Below, piece by piece: positions 10,637-45,624 of a stretch of 64,000 nucleotides of DNA. The notes beneath the pieces were generated by a model, which was given only the letters and a program-made list of their open reading frames with translations, was not told the DNA's origin and searched no databases. This DNA comes from Selaginella moellendorffii (taxonomy: Eukaryota; Plantae; Lycopodiophyta): NCBI RefSeq assembly GCF_000143415.4, contig NW_003314342.1:395569-459568 (forward strand), given 5' to 3'. Every line of letters starts with the position of its first letter. The stretch's first letter is position 1. The translations under genes were made by a program, and so were the position numbers.

Positions 10637-13600
10637 CTAGAAGATGGAGTCGTATTCTTCCGGAAAAGAGCTCCTCAGGATGGCGATCTGGCCGTCTTTC
10701 TCGAGGATCTCTTCTTCCAGCTGCTGGACCTTCCACCTCATGTCCCCGGAGCTCTGGAGCATGCTGAAAACATCGTCGCAACTCTTGGTTCCTCGTCCAG
10801 CTTTGGTGTCGAGCCCCTCGAGCAGTCTCAGATCGTCCTCGATTTCCTGCGCCTCCATCTTCGTCAGCTTGATCCGGAGATCGTGGACGACCACCCTCAA
10901 CTGGTGGATCTCGTCGTCTTTCTTGGCGGCCTCGAGCTCGGAGGTTCTGAGCTTTGCTCGTAGCTGCTCGGCTTCCTCAGCGTTCTTGTCCTGGATTTCA
11001 ATGGTGGACGAGAGCTGCGAGCTCAATCTTGAGAGCTCGTACTCGGTGTCTGCTAGCTTTGTACGCAGGGGATCGGATTCTAAGTTAAGATCGTCCTTCT
11101 CTTTAAGTTTCTCGGTGGCCTGCGTGACTGCTGCTGCCAGCCTCCCGTTTTCTTCTTGGAGAGCTTTGATTTGCGCAGAGTTTGACGCGACCTGTAAAAC
11201 GAAAACTCACTTTAGAGCTTGGATCATACAAAGGCACCTCTGCTTCTTTCCCTTGAGCAAAGACTAAAAGCTCGTCGTTGATCCCGACTAGCTCGTCTAT
11301 CCGTTGCTTTTGATCATTCGCGTCTCGCTTGAATTCGTGCACCCGCTTGACAAGCTCGTACTTTTCAAGCAGAGCTTCATCCGCTTCCTTCTGTATCCCA
11401 CACATTTTCTTTTTTACCTCTTGAACTTCCGAGTCTTTGCCGCTCACAGCGTCTTCCAGCACCGCTACTTTTGACTCGCTCTTTTTCAAGTCTTCTGCCA
11501 GAGTCGCCCCTTTGCATACGCTCTTTGTCAAGTCTTCTTTCAATTGCATTATCGTTTTCTCTAACAATTGTATCTGTCAGGCAAAAAAGAGGTGTGAGAA
11601 CAAGCTTATCGAAAAGCATGAAACTCACGTCGCCTTTGCTTTCTTCCACCTCGGCCTCCAGCGATGTCTTCAGATCAGTGCAGTGAAGTCGAAGTAGCGA
11701 AAGTGCCGTCTCGGTTTTGGACATTTCACTCGCTAGCTGCTGGTTTACTTCCTCGGCGTGGTGGAGAGCTTTTTCTTTTGCCTTGACTTCTTCAGAAAGC
11801 TCTGAAACCTTGAACTCGTTCCCTGCGTTGTGTCTGTTAGTCGCATCCTGTTTTTCCTGTGAAAAGTGAAAAAACAGAATAAGAAACCGGAAACACGCAG
11901 GAATAACTTCAGACCTCTTCAATGTCACAGTTTAAGTCATTGACATGATTTCCTATTTGCTTCAAAATCGTCACGTAGTGCTCTCGCAGATGTTTCACGT
12001 CATGCTGTTCTTTGTCACAGTCGCCAAAACTGAGATTTTCAAGCTTTTCTTTATGCTCTTGACAAACCACGCTAAGATTCTGCACAGCTGTTTCGAGGTC
12101 GCGCAGTTCACCTGATTTGAAACAGTGTAGAAAAACGAGATGGCTAAAAAAGAGCAGATGTCACCTTGTTCTCCTGCCACAAAGGATTTCTCCAAGTTAC
12201 GATGATCCGGTTTCTCGAGTGAATAATCCTTGTCTGCATCCTTATGGCTTGAACTTGTTCTATATCGGTCATGATCGCTGTAATGTCTTTGTTCTTCATA
12301 AACAGGAGATAAATAAACGTTGGAATAACCATTGGGAGCACAGGACGAATTGTTTCTTTTCGATTTTTGTTCTGGTTGATCGTCGCAACTAGCTGGCCTC
12401 TCGTAGCCACAAGATTGGAAGGCCAAGTCATTTTTTGTTTCCGGAGTCGGCTTTCTAACCTCCGGTTTATTGACGAGTCCCGTTTTGTTTCCGCTCTGTT
12501 CTGTTGAGCAACCGTTGTCGAGAACAGACTCAATTGCTTTGGTAACTTTTACGAACATCTCCTCTTTCAACTTCTTGTCCAGAAGCTTGCTGAAATTTCG
12601 TAAGAGATCATTGAGATCGTTTTCAGCATCATTAGAACGGCCTTCCATGACCGTCTTACTTTCAAGACTCTCAGAGCCTTTTGATACATTTTCGAAGGCC
12701 TGAAATCCACACACTTTGTTAGAAAATAGCAGAGAGCTTTCACTTGTACCTTGCCGGAGCTTTTTCGGGAATCACAGCTCCTAGGAGTATCGTCGCCTGA
12801 GGGCGTCTGTAAAATAACATAGATTAAATTTTGACTTTCTTGTCATACTTAGTACCTCAGGTCGATCATGAACATGATTCTTCTCTTCTTTCGTTGTTGA
12901 ACGCGGTGTTTCATGTTTTTCTTCCTGCATTTCCTCGGAAAGTGCTCTGTACTTTTTTTGAACACTTAGCAGCTGATTCCGGTACGCGTCCCCTTTCATC
13001 TTTTCATGTGCCAGCAACTGTTGAAGTCTCAAAGTTTCCTTTTTTGTTTCCTCTTCATTAAGATTAACGCTATGAACCCGCGGTTGTGCCTCTAAAGCCT
13101 AAGAATGGACAACAAAACTCAGAACTAGCGTAAAATGACAACAGGAAAACTTTAGAAACCTGAGGGAGGTGTTCAAGCCTTGCGTTGTCCTCGACAAAGA
13201 GATTGTTCTCCCGAACATTCATCCGACTGATTGCTAGTTCTGCTCTTGGAATCGACCGTCTCATCACGAACTGACCAGCACCAAGTTGCTCGTGGTTTAT
13301 TCTGCAAGTCTGTCCAACTCAAAGATTAAATCAGAATCAACAATAAAGTAAACCTAGAAAACATACCGGTGAAGGGCTGTTTCTAAAGTTGTGCTCCGGA
13401 ATGCTGGGTTCGTCATAGTCTGAGCGCGAGCAGGTGTCTACTCTGGATTCACAGCTCCAATCCGGACGTGAACCTATCGTCGGATTCTGCTGTTCGCTAG
13501 AGTGTTTCTTCCGCTTGACACTCGTCGCTACTCGCTCGGTCTTGGACGACGACATGTAGTAGTGACTTCCATAGTCGGTCTCTGTGCCAGAATTTACGTC

Positions 13601-30334: not shown

Positions 30335-31249
30335 CTTGTGACAAGTAGATATAAAACCACGGGAACGGCCGTAAAGCCTCGTTGGAGAGCAGCAAAATTG
30401 AGAAGCGATGGTGCCAAGTGACCAGCCATTTTGTCAAGGCTGCAAAGAAAATGGAGCTGAGAAGCCATAAATGAATCTCAAAAAAAACGAACCTGTTACT
30501 TATGCTCAGTAACGCTGCAACACCCAGCATGAGGAGCGTCCCCTCTTCCCTTTTGCAAACTTTAGAACAGGAAAAGCAAAAAAAAAAGAGAGAGAAAATC
30601 TTTACCATTGAATCTGTGGCCACCAGGAAGAATTCCCTCCAGGAATCGCCACCGGAGGGGAGTTGTTCTCACTGAGATCCAGCACGACACCATCGCCATC
30701 GGTGGAAAACTTTGGGACCTTGTCACAAGCCTTGGACGAGTTCCAAGGAAGCAAAGGAAGAACCGAGACGATCTTGCCCGGGGGCTCGTCGGATTTCTTC
30801 ACCTCCACCTCCGCCGGGTGATCCAGCGCGAGGAAGTAGCCGCCGAGAGTGACCACCACGATTCCCATGAGCCCCTGCGAGCTCGGGAGCTCGTTGATGA
30901 TCACATAGCTCGTAAAAACCAGAAGAACTGGAGTGAAAGCTAGATAAGGAACAGTGACCGAGAGAGGGGAGACGTGGAGAGCACGCTGGTACATGAACCC
31001 CACCAGAGCCTTGATCGCCGCGGTGACGAGGAGCGCGGCGACGTACTCGGTGTCCAGCCGCGTCAAAGAGAAGAGATCGAAGCCGCCGGAGAGGAGCGCC
31101 ATGGAGGAGAGGAGCAGCGCGTCCAGGAGAGCCACCAGAGCTACGAGCTCGCGGTCCGAGAAGCGCTGGGACGCCCATTTCCTGCTGGCATCGATGCAGC
31201 TGTGGCCGATCGCGGCGCCCGCGGCGTACGCGAATCCTGCCCAGATCAT
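30335..31249 (-). pseudogene. EamA/DMT-family transporter lacking its 3' exons
   Basis: Multi-TM ORF with YQRALHVSPLSVTVPYLAFTPV..NELPSSQGLMGI. The second EamA repeat breaks off after LDKMAG..VVLYLLVT. Confidence 0.75.
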
Positions 31250-37496: not shown

Positions 37497-39170
37497 ATGG
37501 ATTTCTCTCTTCTGGCGAGGGAATGCGCGAAGGCCAGGGATTTGGCACAGGCGCGGCAGATTCTGGCAGCAATCCAGCTCAATCCATATCGATGCCTGGA
37601 TCAGGACACCCGTCTGGGAAATCTTCTCATCGACATGTTTGGGAAATGTGGCTGCACGGGCAATGCGATTGAGGTCTTTGATCGCAACATCGCGTCCCGG
37701 AATGTCTTCTCCTGGAACATCCTGCTCGCGGCTTTGAGCCAGAATGGAGAGCTCCACAGCGCTCGGTTCCTATTCCAGCGAATCCCCTGCCACGATCTCG
37801 TTACCTGGAACACGATGCTCAGCAGCGAATCCTCATCCGCCAGCGCCAAATCGCTCTTCGATCAAATGCCTCAGCGGAACCTCCTCTCCTGGACAGCCAT
37901 GATCATCGCCGCCGCCGCCGCTGCTGCCGATTCGTGGGAGATTTTCAGTAGACTCCCCGAGCGTGATGCCATGGCATACAATGCCATCATTAGGGTTCTT
38001 GCGCGACATGGGCAATTAGCCCGTGGCGAGAGGATCTTAGCCCAGATGCCTAATCCCGAGGATGTGACGTGGACAACGCTAATCCAAGCATATGCCCAGA
38101 CTGGGCATCTGGAGCATGCAAAGGAACTGTTTATATCTTCTGGCTTCCAAACCAATCTCATCTCAACGGCCATGATACAAGCTTTCTCACACAGCTACCG
38201 TCTGTATGACGCAGAGAGAGTTTATAGTAAGCTCTCTAGCCCAGATTCTCTGGCATCGACAGCGATGCTAACCGCATATGCCCAATGCGGGCATATTTAT
38301 AAAGCCCGCATATTCTTTTTAGCGATGCCCAAGAGATCCCTAGCTTCTTGGAACGCGATGCTCACGGGGCTCTCGCAAAAGCACGAGCTGATAGAAGCGT
38401 TTAAGACTTTTTGTTTGATGCCACGGCGTGATCTCAAGTCGTGGAACTTGATCTTGTGCTCGTTCTCTCACAGCGATCGCCTGGAGGATGCCAAGAAGCT
38501 ATTCGAAGCAATGCCGGATCGAGACGCGGTGTCCTGGAACTTGATGCTCGATTCGTGTGTGACTTTCCGGGACTTGGATCAAGCACTGGCTTTGTTCTCG
38601 AGAGCGTCGAGCCGGGACGTTGTAACTTGGACTCTTGCTGTCACTCTCGCTGCTCGAGTTGGCCACCCAGATCAGGCATCGCAGTTCTTCTCAAGGATGG
38701 CGCAGCACGATCTCCTGGCACTGAACACGATGATCGGAGCCTACGCTCACGCCGGCCAGCTTGAGAGAGCTCGGAGGATCTTCGAGAAGATCGAGAGCCC
38801 CAGCACCGATTCCTGGAACTCGATGATTACTGGCTACGCACAGCATGGGCGGGCCGACCAGGCTCTCGGTCTCTTCACTGCCATGGAGCTCCTTGGGGAA
38901 AGACCAGATGAGCTGACCTTCGTGGGGATTCTTTCGGCTTGCAGCTACCAAGGACAAGTGGACGCTGCTCGTGAATACTTCGTCTCAATGCAAGGTGACT
39001 ATCGCGATGTGGAAGTCACGGTGGATCACTACTGCTGCATGGTGGACACGCTTGGGAGATCCGGAAAGCTTGCAGATGCTAGAGAGCTGAGTAGAACGAT
39101 GCCGTTTGAGCCCGACCATGTGGTTTGGACCAGCTTGCTGGGCGCTTCTCGAATTCATGGCAAGCGATAG
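37497..39170 (+). CDS. PLS-class PPR protein ending early in the E region
   Basis: 557-aa intronless ORF with PPR motifs, ending HYCCMVDTLGRSG..WTSLLGASRIHGKR*. Confidence 0.9.
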   Translation: MDFSLLARECAKARDLAQARQILAAIQLNPYRCLDQDTRLGNLLIDMFGKCGCTGNAIEVFDRNIASRNVFSWNILLAALSQNGELHSARFLFQRIPCHDLVTWNTMLSSESSSASAKSLFDQMPQRNLLSWTAMIIAAAAAAADSWEIFSRLPERDAMAYNAIIRVLARHGQLARGERILAQMPNPEDVTWTTLIQAYAQTGHLEHAKELFISSGFQTNLISTAMIQAFSHSYRLYDAERVYSKLSSPDSLASTAMLTAYAQCGHIYKARIFFLAMPKRSLASWNAMLTGLSQKHELIEAFKTFCLMPRRDLKSWNLILCSFSHSDRLEDAKKLFEAMPDRDAVSWNLMLDSCVTFRDLDQALALFSRASSRDVVTWTLAVTLAARVGHPDQASQFFSRMAQHDLLALNTMIGAYAHAGQLERARRIFEKIESPSTDSWNSMITGYAQHGRADQALGLFTAMELLGERPDELTFVGILSACSYQGQVDAAREYFVSMQGDYRDVEVTVDHYCCMVDTLGRSGKLADARELSRTMPFEPDHVVWTSLLGASRIHGKR

Positions 39171-39359
39171 CAGAGTTTTATTTGCTCGATCAAGTCCCTG
39201 GAAGGAAGATCAAACGAGCACGAGCTTAAACGGATTGAAGCATGAAAGCATTGGCAACTTACCGATCTAGCTTTATGTTCCTGGAAGTTCGAGTTTTATC
39301 AAGGAAGGATCACACATCTGGGATGAAACTTAGTGAAGCTATTCTACCTCCGGGATTCG

Positions 39360-39660
39360 TCCTGAAGGTATGATCTTGTTTCTCTAAAAATGTGGGATCG
39401 ATATAAAGCAATAATCACGGTGAGTTTTTCTCTTTTCCTTCTTGTTTGGTTCTTTCATGATTTTGGCATGCTAGTTTCGTAGTTTGGATCGACAATTATT
39501 GATTCCAGGTCTAGGCCTGTCCAGGTTTGGAGTTCCTTCCATGAGGTTAAGAACAGCAGAAGCCAGAGAGATTTGAAAATAACGTGTGGTGGTTCTTGGA
39601 TCTAAAAGACGTTCCTCGAGGAGGTTAGTTGCCTTTTGGTCTGTTTTCTTTTGTTGTTTT
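39360..39660 (+). pseudogene. Degenerate, deleted fragments of an NDUFAF7 copy
   Basis: Matches 14541-14582, ~14647-14728 and ~15251-15358, including intron sequence. Confidence 0.8.
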
Positions 39661-40450
39661 TTGAGAAACTTTTTCATTGGTACTAATCTCTTTCGGATTT
39701 TTATAAAGCTAAGCTAATGGTATCATTCCCAGCCCCGAAGGAGCCCACGATACGAGCTATATTACATGTTAGCACAAGTGGTCTTTTACGGTCTACGCAA
39801 AGCAAGAGTTCCCGGAATCTAGCGATTACGAAAGTAGTTGTGATGGCAGTAGCAGCTCAGTGAGCAGTAAACACGAGGAAGGGATAAGCCGAGTCGCAAG
39901 TTTTTCTTTGTTATCTAAACTTTTGATCCAGAGAGACGAGTGCAATGATCTTGCGGAATTCGGCTCCCCACCTTCAAACCAATACTCCTTCAGCAATTTT
40001 CGTTCAAGGTGATGAAAGTTCTTGGCGCTCTCAGACGATCATAACAGAACGCACAGCTCTTTGAGAAGATATGGTGCATCGCTTCAAGAACGTCGTCGAT
40101 CCTAGCGATTCAAGCGCTGGCATTTCCAGATCCATCGCTGGGAGTGTGTGAAAGAGATGCTATTGTACATATATCACACCACCCTTCTATGTTCCCTGTT
40201 AAGTAGTTCTCTGCTCTAAAGGAAGACGGGAAAAAAGGAGTGTCACTCCAGCATGAAATTTTCAAGGCTTTGGCAGATCCTTTCCACTCTGCTGCAGCAG
40301 CATATCATAGTTAAGGGATACTAACTGCGAGAGATTCTGCGAAAGCCAAAAAAAGAAAAATCCCAGTCGGCCAGCACCATCGTCAGTCAAAACAGGACTT
40401 GGATTTGATATTCACAGACATTTGCTTTGTCATTGTTTTAAAACTTTGAT

Positions 40451-43148
40451 CTAGCTATTGACATTGTTGTTCCTTTGCGCGGCCAGGACTAGAGACATGC
40501 CGCTACGACAGACCTGCTCTATAGCTCTGCCATTTTCCACTGTATCAACTTGTTGCGGGCGGTATCGTGGCCTTTCGGTCTTGCAAAAGAGCCAGTCGAG
40601 TCCATTCAGCACCATGAACGTACCAATGCCGCCGATCAAGCCATAAGCAATGGAGTACGTAAGAGGCATGAGGATGATGGTAATGAACGCCGGGATGGCT
40701 TCTCTCATGTCATCCCAGTCAATCTCCTTGACGGACTTCACCATCAAAACTCCGACGAGAACAAGCGCCGGTCCAACTGCCCAAGGTGGAATAGAAGCCA
40801 GCAGCGGTGTGAAAAACAGCGCCAGGAAAAAGTACATCGCCACAGCAAGAGCAGTAATCCCGGTTCTCCCACCTTCTCGAATTCCCGTGGACGACTCGAT
40901 GAAAGCGGTGACAGGGGAAGTTCCAAGTGCCGAGCCGACCACGATTGCTGCATCGCTCATGAAGCATCGCTCATCGCTCGTCGGCTGCAGGGGAAGTTCC
41001 AAGGCCTGTTACCCCAGAGTTACTCACCCACTCTGGCGGTCCCTGCGGCATCTCGGACTGCTCGCTGGTCTGCTCCAACGCCACCATCCCGGCACAGCGC
41101 TGCTCGGGCCTCACTCCCGGCGGTACACCGCTCACTCTAGTCAAGCCAGGTGCCGAGTGCAAGGACCCAGGGGCCCAGAACAAAGGATACTCCGACTGCC
41201 TGGACCAGACGAAGCGTGATCTCATCGTTGCCACGGCAGCTTCCTCGCTCATCGGCAGTGTCATCATGGGAGTCTTCGCAAATCTCCCGCTCGGGCTGGC
41301 GCCTGGGATGGGAGCAAACGCCTACTTTGCGTACACCGTCGTCGGCTTCCACGGCTCCGGAAGTGTCTCCTATGGTGGAGCTCTAGCGGCTGTGTTCGTC
41401 GAGGGACTGATCTTTCTCGGGCTGGCAGCACTCGGCCTCAGGACTCGGCTGGCCAAGGCCATCCCTCGCCCCGTCCGCATCTCCAGTGCGGTTGGTATCG
41501 GTGTCTTCCTCACCTTAATCGGCTTGCAGTCGAGCGAAGGCGTCGGGCTCATCGTCTTCAGTCCGTCATCTCTGGTGACGCTGGGTGGATGCCCGGCAGT
41601 GGACCGAGTAGCGGTAGCACCGGTTGTCACCAACACCACAACCGGTGTCTCCCGTCTCATGCCCGGCGGTACCATCTCCTCTAACGTCCTGTGCACGCGT
41701 AACCGGATGGAAGATCCCACTCTCTGGCTTGGGGTCATCGGCTTCGTCATCATCGCATATGCTCTCGTCAGGGGTGTCAAAGGTGCCATGATCTACGGCA
41801 TTGTCTTCGTCACCGGCATCTCCTGGTTCCGGGGAACGAAGGTGACGTACTTCCCAAATACCGACGCTGGTAACACGGCCTACTCGTACTTCCGCAAGGT
41901 GGTCGACGTTCACACCATCAAAGGCACCGCTGGAGCTCTCTCCTTTGCTGAAATGGGCAAGAGCCAGTTCTGGGTGGCGCTCATCACCTTCCTCTACGTC
42001 GACATACTGGATACCACCGGAACTCTCTACTCCATGGCCAAGTTCGCCGGCTACGTCGACGAGAATGGCAATTTCGAGGGGCAGTACCAGGCCTTCATGA
42101 GCGATGCTGCAGGGGGATGCTGCAGGGGAAGTTCCAAGTGCCGAGCCGATGAGCCAAGCCTTCATCACTCATCACTCATCACGTAGATCATGGCACCTTT
42201 GACACCCCTGATGAGAGCATACGCGATGATGACGAAGCCGACGACCCCAAGCCAGAGAGTGGGATCTTCCATCCGGTTACGCGTGCACAGGACGTTAGAG
42301 GAGATGGTACCGCCGGGCATGAGACGGGAGACACCGGTTGTGGTGTTGGTGACAACCGGTGCTACCGCTACTCGGTCCGCTGCCGGGCATCCACCCAGCG
42401 TCACCAGAGATGACGGACTGAAGACGATGAGCCCGACGCCTTCGCTCGACTGCAAGCCGATTAAGGTGAGGAAGACACCGATACCAACCGCGCTGGAGAT
42501 GCGGACGGGGCGGGGGATGGCCTTGGCCAGCCGAGTCCTGAGGCCGAGTGCTGCCAGCCCGAGAAAGATCAGTCCCTCGACGAACACAGCCGCTAGAGCT
42601 CCACCATAGGAGACACTTCCGGAGCCGTGGAAGCCGACGACGGTGTACGCAAAGTAGGCGTTTGCTCCCATCCCAGGCGCCAGCCCGAGCGGGAGATTTG
42701 CGAAGACTCCCATGATGACACTGCCGATGAGCGAGGAAGCTGCCGTGGCAACGATGAGATCACGCTTCGTCTGGTCCAGGCAGTCGGAGTATCCTTTGTT
42801 CTGGGCCCCTGGGTCCTTGCACTCGGCACCTGGCTTGACTAGAGTGAGCGGTGTACCGCCGGGAGTGAGGCCCGAGCAGCGCTGTGCCAGGATGGTGGCG
42901 TTGGAGCAGACCAGCGAGCAGTCCGAGATGCCGCAGGGACCGCCAGAGTGGGTGAGTATGCTGGCGTTCACCGCGAGGATATATGCCATCGTGAGGAAAG
43001 TTGCTGTGCCGGCTCTCACCTCTCGAGTGAAGCAAGAGTTTCGCTCCTCCAGCTTGAAATACCTCCCGACTCTGCTCCGAGCGACTGCCATGTTGAGGTG
43101 ATCTATGCCTGAGTTCCATTGCTCGCTCAATCTCCTGATAGAATCCAT
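40451..43148 (-). pseudogene. AZG1: AZG-type adenine/guanine permease (NCS2/AzgA) broken by an inversion-duplication
   Basis: 5' part 43148-42182 (-): [35 protein letters not shown]. Middle part 41021-42112 (+): DILDTTGTL. 3' part 40964-40451 (-): [30 protein letters not shown]. Confidence 0.9.
41021..42958. repeat. Inverted repeat, arms 41021-41797 and 42182-42958 (777 bp each), 384-nt loop
   Basis: Arms are reverse complements with about 7 mismatches by eye. The ORF track shows mirror ORFs on opposite strands. Confidence 0.95.
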
Positions 43149-44056
43149 TGTGAAAACTTTGAGCAGCCTAAAGGGGAAGTCGGCAAGAAAAGGATGTTGA
43201 GCTCACAACCGAAATCCAAATATGTGTGATTATTTATATTATACATGCAAGAACAATGATTGTCCTAAATGACGTTGTAAACTTGTGGTGTGCAAGAGGA
43301 AACAATCTCCAAAACCGTTTCCAGATCCAGTAAGTTCTACTCTGCGAGCTCTACACTCCGCAAAGGTTCTACAGAACTGTTACTTGTTTGTCTTCTTCAC
43401 GCAGATATCTCTCGTCTTACCACCCCAGAGTTTTATGTGCTCGAGTTCCTGGAAGTTCGATTTCATCGAGGAACGATCACACATCTGGAATGGAACCTAC
43501 CGAAGTTATTCTTCTAGCTGGAAATCTTCTGGGTTATCTACGTCGATCGGCTGCTCGGGCTGCTCAGAGACAACCTGGTGTTTGATCACAGCACTTGCGA
43601 TCATTCAAGCGTAGTTATTAAGCTTACGATTCTCGCTGGGGAGCGCAAGAGAAGGTAGTCCTCGAGCTCGTTGTCGTGAAGCTGGACCCTTGCGTCCATG
43701 AGCTCCAGCGCTCGCTCCAGATTTTCCACAGACGGCTGCGACAGCGCGCGTCCTAAAAGCGAGAGATTTAGCGATCCATGGCCTTGGCACACGATATTTC
43801 GCAGCCATTCTCACCCGATGCAGTCGTCAGGCCTGGAATGTCGTGCACGGACGGAGAGGTTTCCAGCAGAACGGCCGTGTACCTGGACTCCCTGATGATC
43901 CTTGCATCTGGAGCTAGCGATTCTCCCGTGAGACCCTGGCGAAACAGAAATGCCGCATAGCTTACCGCGCCTAGAGCGCTCGTCCGCCATGGCCCTGTTT
44001 TTAGGGTTCTTGGGGGATTTGACCAGTTGGCATAACATTAGGGCTTTAGAGAAGCT

Positions 44057-45624
44057 ATGGCGATTCTTTGTTTGCCGCCACCAGCGCCAGACAGGGCGGC
44101 CGGCAAGGATTTCGAGGAGGCGGTGGAGCGGCGCTGGAAATGGCTGCAATGCGTGGAGGATCTGGTGAGGAAGATTGTTCTAGGGGGCGAAGGCCGGATG
44201 TGGCTGTGCGCGGCGCTGGGATCTCTTGATTTGCCCCCGGCGGCGCAAAGAGCTGCGTTTCTAGGGCTCGTCTCGAAAGATGGCGAGGAAGGGCGCAGTA
44301 TTCGGCAGCGCGTCATCCGGATGCTGTGCGAGAACAGGCCCGCGTGGGCAGCGAGGGTTCTCGCTCGCGACGATCGACTTCTAAGGCGATTCTTCGAAGG
44401 TAAACCATCGAATCTCGCTTCATGGATGTGATTCATGGGTTGCTTGCGCAGGAGATTCACAGAGAATACTTCAGTGGTTTGGGAAGTTCTCGAGCGGTGG
44501 CAACAGCGATCACCAGTGGGGTGCTCGAGCGCTGGCTCGATTTACTTTCGTCCATCGTGAATCCTGCTGGCATGAGCTCGATTGGAATGGCAAGCACGGC
44601 CAAGCTCCGGCCACGGTCGCGTCAAAGCCACATTACTTCCTCGAGCTTGATGTGTTGCGAACAGTGGACAACTTCCTCGACAAGGTGCCATCCTTTTGGA
44701 GGTCTGACGAGCTCTGGGACTCCATGAAGAATGGAGAGTTTTTGAGCCTCGACATAGACTTCTTCATCAACGCGCTTGAGGAGAAGATGATGGTGGACGA
44801 TTGCCCAGAGACTTGGAATCTCGTGGAAGACTACCTCGCGGAGGAATCGCTGTCCAAGCTCTCCAACTGCGTGCTCCATCTCCTCTCGGAGGAGAGCCTC
44901 TTGACTTTCGTGAACGAGCTCGTCTTCCAGATGAGCAGCAAGGGACCGAGAAAGAACGAGAGGAAAGGTGGCGGCCGGGAAAAGCAAAAGACTTGGCTGC
45001 AAGAGGTGATTCTATCCGAGGAAAGGTGCCCGACGCTCTACGATGCTATCGTTTGCAACGCTTGTGCCAACCACAGGAGACAGATAGTGAAGATCGTTGG
45101 GGATGAAGACTACGAGGAAGAAACAAAGGTTTTGAAGCGACTACTTGGTGAGGCCGAGTGTGATCCAGCGGTGGTGTGGGCGGTGAGGAGGCAGAACTTG
45201 AAGCTGGATAAGTGGAGTTGCTTGAAGTTCCTGGGGCTGGAAGCACTGATGCTTTATTGGTATCTCACGGAGAATAGCGGTCAGATCTCCTATCCTCTTC
45301 TATTCAAAGAGAACGGGATACGTTCCGACGCGGCTCCAGTAACCCCGAGGAAGAGGAAGAAGAGGAAAAGTCGGAAGAGCCGAAAGGATACAGAGGATTC
45401 AAGTAATTCTGGCTCTGACGATGGTGAAAGCAGCAGTATGGAGCACAAGTCGTGGAGATTGTGCACGGACAACTTTCGGTTTTTGTGGAGAAAGGTTTGC
45501 GAAGCTGTTTTGTTTTTTTACTGACAAGATGATTTGCTCGCTCCAATTCCAGGAAGATCTTCCCGAACATCTCTCTGGTTACGCGTTTGACGAATGGGTC
45601 AGGTGGACGGTCGCGCATTGGTAG
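44057..45624 (+). CDS. Conserved uncharacterised plant protein (At5g48340-like), 3 exons
   Basis: EGRMWLCAAL, RRFFEG|DSQRILQWF, ELDWNGKHGQAPATVASKPHYFLELDVLRTVDNFL, and NLS RKRKKRK. Confidence 0.75.

Follow-up and report, generated by a model that had tools for sequence, protein, structure and literature searches.

What becomes of a gene when part of it is copied or turned into reverse orientation within its own borders is the question raised by a locus in the 64,000-nucleotide stretch of Selaginella moellendorffii DNA analysed here (the window; contig NW_003314342.1, positions 395,569 to 459,568). The window belongs to scaffold GL377646.1, on which window positions 31008–52186 correspond to 426576–447754 over 21 kb at 100% identity, and the variant, which lies inside a gene for an AZG permease, is found at about 436.0–438.7 kb. 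Inverted gene duplications are the textbook start of plant hairpin small interfering RNAs (siRNAs) and of young microRNA (MIRNA) genes, and to our knowledge the founding duplication is rarely seen beside the unrearranged allele. A first-pass annotation of the window had proposed such a case: a young hairpin-RNA or proto-MIRNA locus that could silence the intact AZG copies. The explanation that best accounts for our results, and which we hold to be quite likely as a whole, is that of a real complex inverted duplication, confined to one haplotype and generated by template switching, which left a pseudogene allele that later underwent decay of the methylation type, the formation of a hairpin being possible.

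A repeat search covering window 39000–45000 yielded a single inverted pair, 41021–41797 and 42182–42958, with arms of 777 nt that are 99% complementary and separated by 384 nt, so that the 777-bp inverted duplication annotated at 41021–42958 inside the AZG gene is reproduced in coordinates, length and spacing; on the scaffold it occupies GL377646.1:436,589–438,526. Base-by-base comparison of the arms reveals 7 mismatches and no insertion or deletion, and beyond both arm ends the similarity stops abruptly. The ancestral gene was intronless and ordered A-B-C-D (codons 1–63, 64–322, 323–427 and 428 to the end, respectively), and its order on the minus strand is now A-B-filler-rc(C)-rc(B)-filler-D, where rc denotes the reverse complement. 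Segment A (42959–43148, minus strand), placed by alignment of the ATG and by the Pfam PF00860 match of the open reading frame (ORF) that starts there, provides the start codon and the first 63 codons, including the first transmembrane segment (TM1), as a single copy in native orientation. It is followed by arm R (42182–42958, minus strand), the sense copy of B (codons 64–322), and by the 69-nt filler of junction 1 (42113–42181), which carries a premature stop at 42165–42167. Segment C (41798–42112, plus strand; codons 323–427) then appears inverted, as established from an open frame that runs from B into C and from its match to positions 10932–11246 of the homologous scaffold described below (L001), and leads into arm L (41021–41797, plus strand), the inverted second copy of B. 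The 56-nt filler of junction 2 (40965–41020) separates arm L from segment D (40451–40964, minus strand; PF00860, E 3e-17), which holds the C-terminal 170 codons and the stop in native orientation and in open frame. Segment C is single and not duplicated, and the inverted block is exactly the gene's own B plus C. The loop had been given as 384 nt, a length that stands; it is not plain loop sequence, as it consists of the 315 nt of the inverted next gene segment (41798–42112) and the 69 nt of junction filler (42113–42181).

The consequences for the coding capacity are clear. On the minus strand the frame opens at the ATG at 43148, proceeds through 322 AZG codons and 5 unrelated codons and stops at 42165, making an ORF of 327 aa; a plus-strand frame reads 258 of these codons again, followed by the next 105 codons of the protein, and the last 170 codons occupy the minus-strand frame 40964–40451. 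No uninterrupted frame spans all transmembrane segments, as C and the second B continue in antisense, and the window allele is a pseudogene whose frame ends after 322 AZG codons, about half of the protein. The 5′ end of the gene had been described as retained, which is indeed so: in the alignment, the ATG at 43148 coincides with that of the intact AZG1 genes located elsewhere in the cluster (see below), and the upstream region is collinear with the other haplotype. The 392-aa gene model P0220, called on the plus strand at window 41008–42186, is the inverted B plus C copy read on that strand, that is, an annotation artefact.

The assignment to the AZG family was made by searching the pieces one by one. 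Three gene pieces match Pfam PF00860 (Xan_ur_permease) with E values of 2e-9, 1e-5 and 3e-17, the middle one scoring 24.6 bits, just below the cut-off of 27, and all share 63–69% identity with AZG1 proteins of plants (angiosperms and lycophytes). The 407-aa stop-free frame that passes through arm L and the loop was used to find the Selaginella AZG1 proteins; it is 96% identical to S. moellendorffii SELMODRAFT_419549, with other Selaginella AZG1 proteins in the same 90% cluster. Judged by sequence, the locus is that of an AZG permease of the AzgA-type NCS2 group, differing from plant AZG1 permeases in that the window copy, although all its pieces match, cannot encode a full transporter. Transport of purines and cytokinins by AZG proteins has been reported (PMC11992111), in agreement with the function attributed to them in the first-pass annotation.

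Whether the structure exists in the plant, rather than in the assembly, was addressed by comparison with homologous scaffolds. The genome is a 2011-era Sanger assembly in which two haplotypes were kept as separate scaffolds. One of these, GL377608.1 (L001, harbouring SELMODRAFT_419549 / EFJ18930.1), is collinear with the window at 95.5–97.8% identity and has the same neighbouring genes; within 6 kb around its AZG gene no direct or inverted repeat is seen. We read this scaffold as the second haplotype, and since the repeat is missing from it, the sequenced plant is heterozygous for the inverted duplication, whose absence from the allelic chromosome is a hallmark of an inverted duplication rearrangement (DUP-INV). 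The rearranged AZG1-type gene is hereafter locus 2, while locus 1 designates the site of the intact AZG1 genes, L003 and L004, one on each of the two scaffolds. In comparison with L001, L003 and L004, the two arms share 8 derived changes, together with a 7-bp block absent from L001, and therefore both belong to the same haplotype instead of being a mixture of haplotypes or paralogues. Moreover, the arms are only 92% identical to the locus-1 genes; given the common changes and the common block, neither arm was borrowed from another copy. The arms have diverged by 0.9%, as compared to an allelic dS of 2.75% at locus 1 and a paralogue dS of 19.6%, so that by raw divergence the repeat is younger than the haplotype split.

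An origin in assembly or cloning, whether from a chimeric clone or because haplotypes or paralogues were mis-joined, might be entertained for an assembly holding both haplotypes as separate scaffolds. Such an origin is hardly credible: besides the haplotype-specific changes common to both arms, the 7 differences between them are all C-to-T changes at CG or CHG sites, a pattern that sequencing error or propagation in E. coli would not yield, and the junctions contain structured templated filler with a second inversion nearby. We have thus rejected an artefact or a haplotype mix.

The junctions are also informative as to how the rearrangement came about. Both fillers are patchworks of copies of 10–27 nt from L001:11227–11282, that is, from around the C/D breakpoint and in both orientations, so that the filler was copied from within about 1 kb; a chimeric 20-mer is common to the fillers of junctions 1 and 2, and the 20 nt corresponding to L001:11227–11246 have been retained twice, once where C ends and once where D begins. 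The junction 1 filler (42149–42181) contains 18 nt identical to a stretch in junction 2 (40965–40985) save that all three CG read TG, a difference that could reflect either further C-to-T decay or error-prone synthesis of the filler. Past the gene, 84 nt beyond the stop codon, a 326-bp piece of the 3′ flank (segment X, window 40042–40367) is inverted with respect to L001. This inversion is derived in the window haplotype, because the orientation of L001 recurs in a decayed AZG copy beside locus 1; small deletions are seen at the ends of X. The junction 2 filler also holds the 10-mer GGGGTAACAG, which in 21.7 kb of L001 is found only at the ancestral junction between the D flank and X, and part of which has been deleted from the inverted X of the window. 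By chance, about 0.2 matches of a 10-mer would be expected between this filler and the gene region of 2 kb, and far fewer that coincide with a breakpoint. These observations are suggestive, although not conclusive, of a single complex event, in which the template was switched several times, as the source of both inversions.

An adjacent inverted copy with templated insertions or microhomology at its breakpoints is what defines fold-back or DUP-INV variants, and this is what is found here. Such variants arise by template switching, either through fork stalling and template switching or microhomology-mediated break-induced replication (FoSTeS/MMBIR), or through theta-mediated end joining with templated insertions. 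The AZG locus resembles them in its adjacent inverted copy, short spacer, local filler in both orientations and second small inversion close by, and departs from them in that its mechanism is read from junction sequence only, the microhomology being short and the origin of the filler partly unclear. Templated filler at both junctions argues for a replication or repair accident with template switching and not for an assembly error, and we propose that an accident of the fold-back, MMBIR or theta-mediated end-joining kind, with several switches, would have converted A-B-C-D into A-B-filler-rc(C)-rc(B)-filler-D and produced the 326-bp inversion past the stop.

The insertion, in reverse, of a mobile element carrying an AZG fragment would be another route to an inverted copy, and AZG fragments do lie in both orientations at locus 1. 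We consider transposon-mediated capture highly improbable and have discarded it: at the inverted block we saw no terminal repeats, target-site duplication or foreign sequence, the insert is the gene's own B plus C from the same haplotype lineage, C is not duplicated and the filler is local.

The mutations which the repeat accumulated after its formation were examined as well. All 7 differences between the arms are derived C-to-T changes (T or A in the one arm, at sites where C or G is common to L001, L003 and L004), of which 5 fell on the inverted copy (arm L) and 2 on the sense copy (arm R), 6 being at CG and 1 at CHG sites. CpG bases make up 18% of the arm, and the probability of at least 6 of 7 changes falling on CpG by chance is 2e-4 (binomial test). 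Likewise, the CpG-transition share of 6/7 in the arms exceeds the 47/200 counted when the alleles are compared over genes and flanks nearby (6/18, 8/30 and 33/152; Fisher p=0.0013). In the loop, 3 of the 4 changes derived on the window haplotype are CpG transitions, as against 1 of the 8 changes older than the duplication. S. moellendorffii is reported to be without gene-body methylation of the angiosperm type (PMC5410703); together with the bias of C-to-T changes towards CG and CHG sites, this suggests that the repeat became cytosine-methylated after its formation. It would have been recognised as a repeat, methylated and probably silenced. Decay of methylated cytosines is no less compatible with a silenced repeat than with an active regulator.

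A distinct kind of lesion is observed on the other haplotype. In L001, alignment of the 5′ ends places a GTG at the position of the ATG that is found in the window and in both locus-1 genes, and the loss of 7 bp (CTGCTCG) at about codon 78 introduces a frameshift. The public 580-aa model SELMODRAFT_419549 (L001:9973–11743) takes as its start an ATG that is out of frame and is back in frame only past this deletion; residues 1–66 hence bear no relation to AZG, and the model lacks the conserved TM1. The L001 allele is thus probably a pseudogene annotated as a gene, and by sequence locus 2 carries two independent disabling lesions, one per haplotype.

Locus 1 (SELMODRAFT_426188 and SELMODRAFT_419524) lies about 135 kb from locus 2 on each scaffold, and its genes L003 and L004 code for intact products of 579 and 580 aa. 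Between the two loci, with substitutions counted per piece and then summed, dS is 0.196 and dN 0.044; the resulting omega of 0.22 indicates that locus 2 was constrained for most of its history and that its loss is recent. The sequences therefore depict locus 2, a redundant AZG1 paralogue, as being lost while intact AZG1 genes are kept at locus 1 in both haplotypes, and the number of AZG1 loci still working in this cluster of S. moellendorffii is probably one, not two.

Both haplotypes contain older AZG fragments on the downstream side of the intact locus-1 gene. Some 700 nt past that gene lies an older AZG-derived fold-back (L003:12405–13214 and L004:12586–13407) in which the 5′ untranslated region (UTR) and first codons are present both in sense and in antisense, the copies being 86–94% complementary, with a predicted imperfect stem of about 260 bp at −544 kcal/mol, versus −282 for shuffled sequences (z=−29). 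Few perfect 21-mers to the genes are left in it, and a 101-aa gene model has been called across it. Going by these sequences, AZG-derived fold-backs arose at least twice in the cluster, the older one providing a picture of the decay to which such structures are subject. Further along (L003:14520–16241 and L004:14683–16358) lies a decayed partial AZG copy, comprising the middle part and the 3′ UTR, followed by a homologue of the locus-2 3′ flank (window 39723–40367), an arrangement that suggests a shared duplication history for locus 2 and this fragment.

Could the repeat nevertheless act as a hairpin-RNA locus? A sense transcript modelled with 60 nt ahead of the ATG and 100 nt past the stop is predicted to fold such that 773 of the 777 arm bases pair with their cognate partner, the hairpin alone having a minimum energy of −1958 kcal/mol. 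A long near-perfect inverted repeat, as is characteristic of endogenous hairpin-RNA loci, is therefore present, and the fold that had been envisaged for a transcript of one arm, loop and other arm, with about 780 bp of double-stranded RNA (dsRNA), agrees with this predicted 773-bp stem. Transcription from either side would produce dsRNA of about 775 bp, from which Dicer-like cleavage could release siRNAs matching the paralogues. Potential targets do exist among the intact AZG copies, in line with what had been anticipated: of the 757 21-mers of an arm, 131–192 match the locus-1 genes perfectly and 571–585 with at most 2 mismatches, and the corresponding figures for the other locus-2 allele are 470–507 and 715 (the latter for arm R). 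On these counts the sequence requirements for silencing in trans are in place.

The description of the locus as a proto-MIRNA, however, was an overstatement. MIRNA genes are recognised by a short imperfect hairpin giving one precise duplex, or by membership in a known family, and a near-perfect stem of 777 bp would instead be expected to give mixed siRNAs. A search of Rfam 15 at gathering score returned no match on L002, the sequence that includes the window AZG locus, or on L003, and a known RNA family was discarded on this basis. As modelled, the window locus is at most a long hairpin-RNA candidate. Protein records say little on a transcript of the locus: an exact look-up of the 327-aa truncated product retrieved no record, and a word search with the 183-aa C-terminal piece no near-identical fragment (best 84%), both being uninformative on expression. 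The 392-aa model and the paralogues were seen on NCBI genome scaffolds only.

A more far-reaching proposal is that the locus is active, the AZG promoter reading both arms and 21-nt Dicer-like products silencing locus 1 and the other locus-2 allele in trans, which would make the allele a dominant knock-down that might with time become a MIRNA. We regard this proposal, taken as one, as possible but rather unlikely. It draws support from the intact 5′ end with its upstream region, both of them collinear with the other haplotype, and from the first 322 codons that have been kept, as well as from the predicted 773-bp stem with its 21-mer matches to the locus-1 genes and the other allele and from the older AZG-derived fold-back beside locus 1. 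Orthologues of DCL1, DCL3 and DCL4 are present in S. moellendorffii, which speaks for such activity, while DCL2 and a clear peak of small RNAs at 24 nt are not, which speaks against it (PMC5569507); CHH methylation is also reported to be missing in its aerial tissue (PMC5569507). The methylation-type decay of the arms is double-edged, as it could have been left by dsRNA-triggered silencing, whereas cytosine methylation would usually accompany transcriptional shut-down. Furthermore, the premature stop followed by a tail of 1.7 kb would expose a sense transcript to decay, and with no Rfam family and a 777-bp near-perfect stem the locus does not conform to a MIRNA. As for effects in trans, L001 segment B has undergone 3 changes in 770 nt since the haplotype split, none of them a CpG transition; this gives no sign of trans-methylation, in a test that is very weak and without power.

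Natural inverted-repeat alleles offer a comparison. Rice Lgc1, Arabidopsis PAI1-PAI4 and maize Mu killer are similar alleles of this kind. The soybean I locus (GmIRCHS, or CHS1-3-4) is alike in being an inverted duplication of genes or pseudogenes next to its family, with paralogues that siRNAs can target, and its repeat does yield siRNAs which silence CHS7 and CHS8 in trans (PMC3804491, PMC3859349), a precedent for paralogue silencing by inverted repeats that also favours an active AZG hairpin. Small RNAs, dominance and phenotype have been shown for the I locus and such alleles, whereas the AZG repeat is known from sequence; it also differs in lying inside a single gene, heterozygous in one plant, in a lycophyte without a 24-nt siRNA peak (PMC5569507).

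With regard to MIRNA birth, the AZG repeat, as a long near-perfect fold-back of a future target, would correspond to the earliest stage of the inverted-duplication model. That model was reportedly put forward by Allen et al. in 2004. It has since been updated (PMC3237417). The likeness goes no further, as a MIRNA gives a precise duplex from a short imperfect hairpin, and a 777-bp stem is at most raw material for one.

Several considerations weigh against our preferred account of a template-switch duplication, now a decayed pseudogene. Methylation and silencing are deduced from 7 substitutions in the arms plus 3 in the loop. The case for a single event is built on the filler patterns and one 10-mer, and two separate events may have taken place. 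The assembly is of the Sanger type and dates from about 2011. Finally, the loss of function assigned to L001 is a reading of its sequence, and a protein initiated at an internal or out-of-frame ATG may keep some activity.

In the surroundings of the locus, an intronless gene for a 557-aa pentatricopeptide repeat (PPR) protein (window 37497–39170, plus strand) is arranged tail to tail with the AZG gene and is kept in the other haplotype at L001:13036–14709. A 52-nt direct repeat, 83% identical between window 39294–39345 and 43461–43512 and 4167 bp apart, brackets the AZG locus; it could be fortuitous or else a vestige of copying of the locus.

With both haplotypes at hand, the breakpoints, the filler and the first mutations that followed an inverted gene duplication can be read directly. 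The locus also corrects the public annotation with respect to the N-terminus of SELMODRAFT_419549 and the 392-aa model called from the other strand. Should small RNAs turn up, the repeat would allow hairpin silencing to be tested cleanly, in a natural setting, in a plant lacking DCL2 and a 24-nt siRNA peak. That we are looking at a heterozygous hairpin-RNA locus at its birth, with siRNAs already lowering the only intact AZG1 genes in trans and methylation drawn onto the repeat, is a bolder possibility and in our view a doubtful one. Were it true, the templated junctions would show that inverted gene duplications can form in a single step and, taken with the older fold-back at locus 1, the dosage of AZG in Selaginella, and with it the import of cytokinins and purines, would have come repeatedly under the control of hairpins derived from the gene itself.

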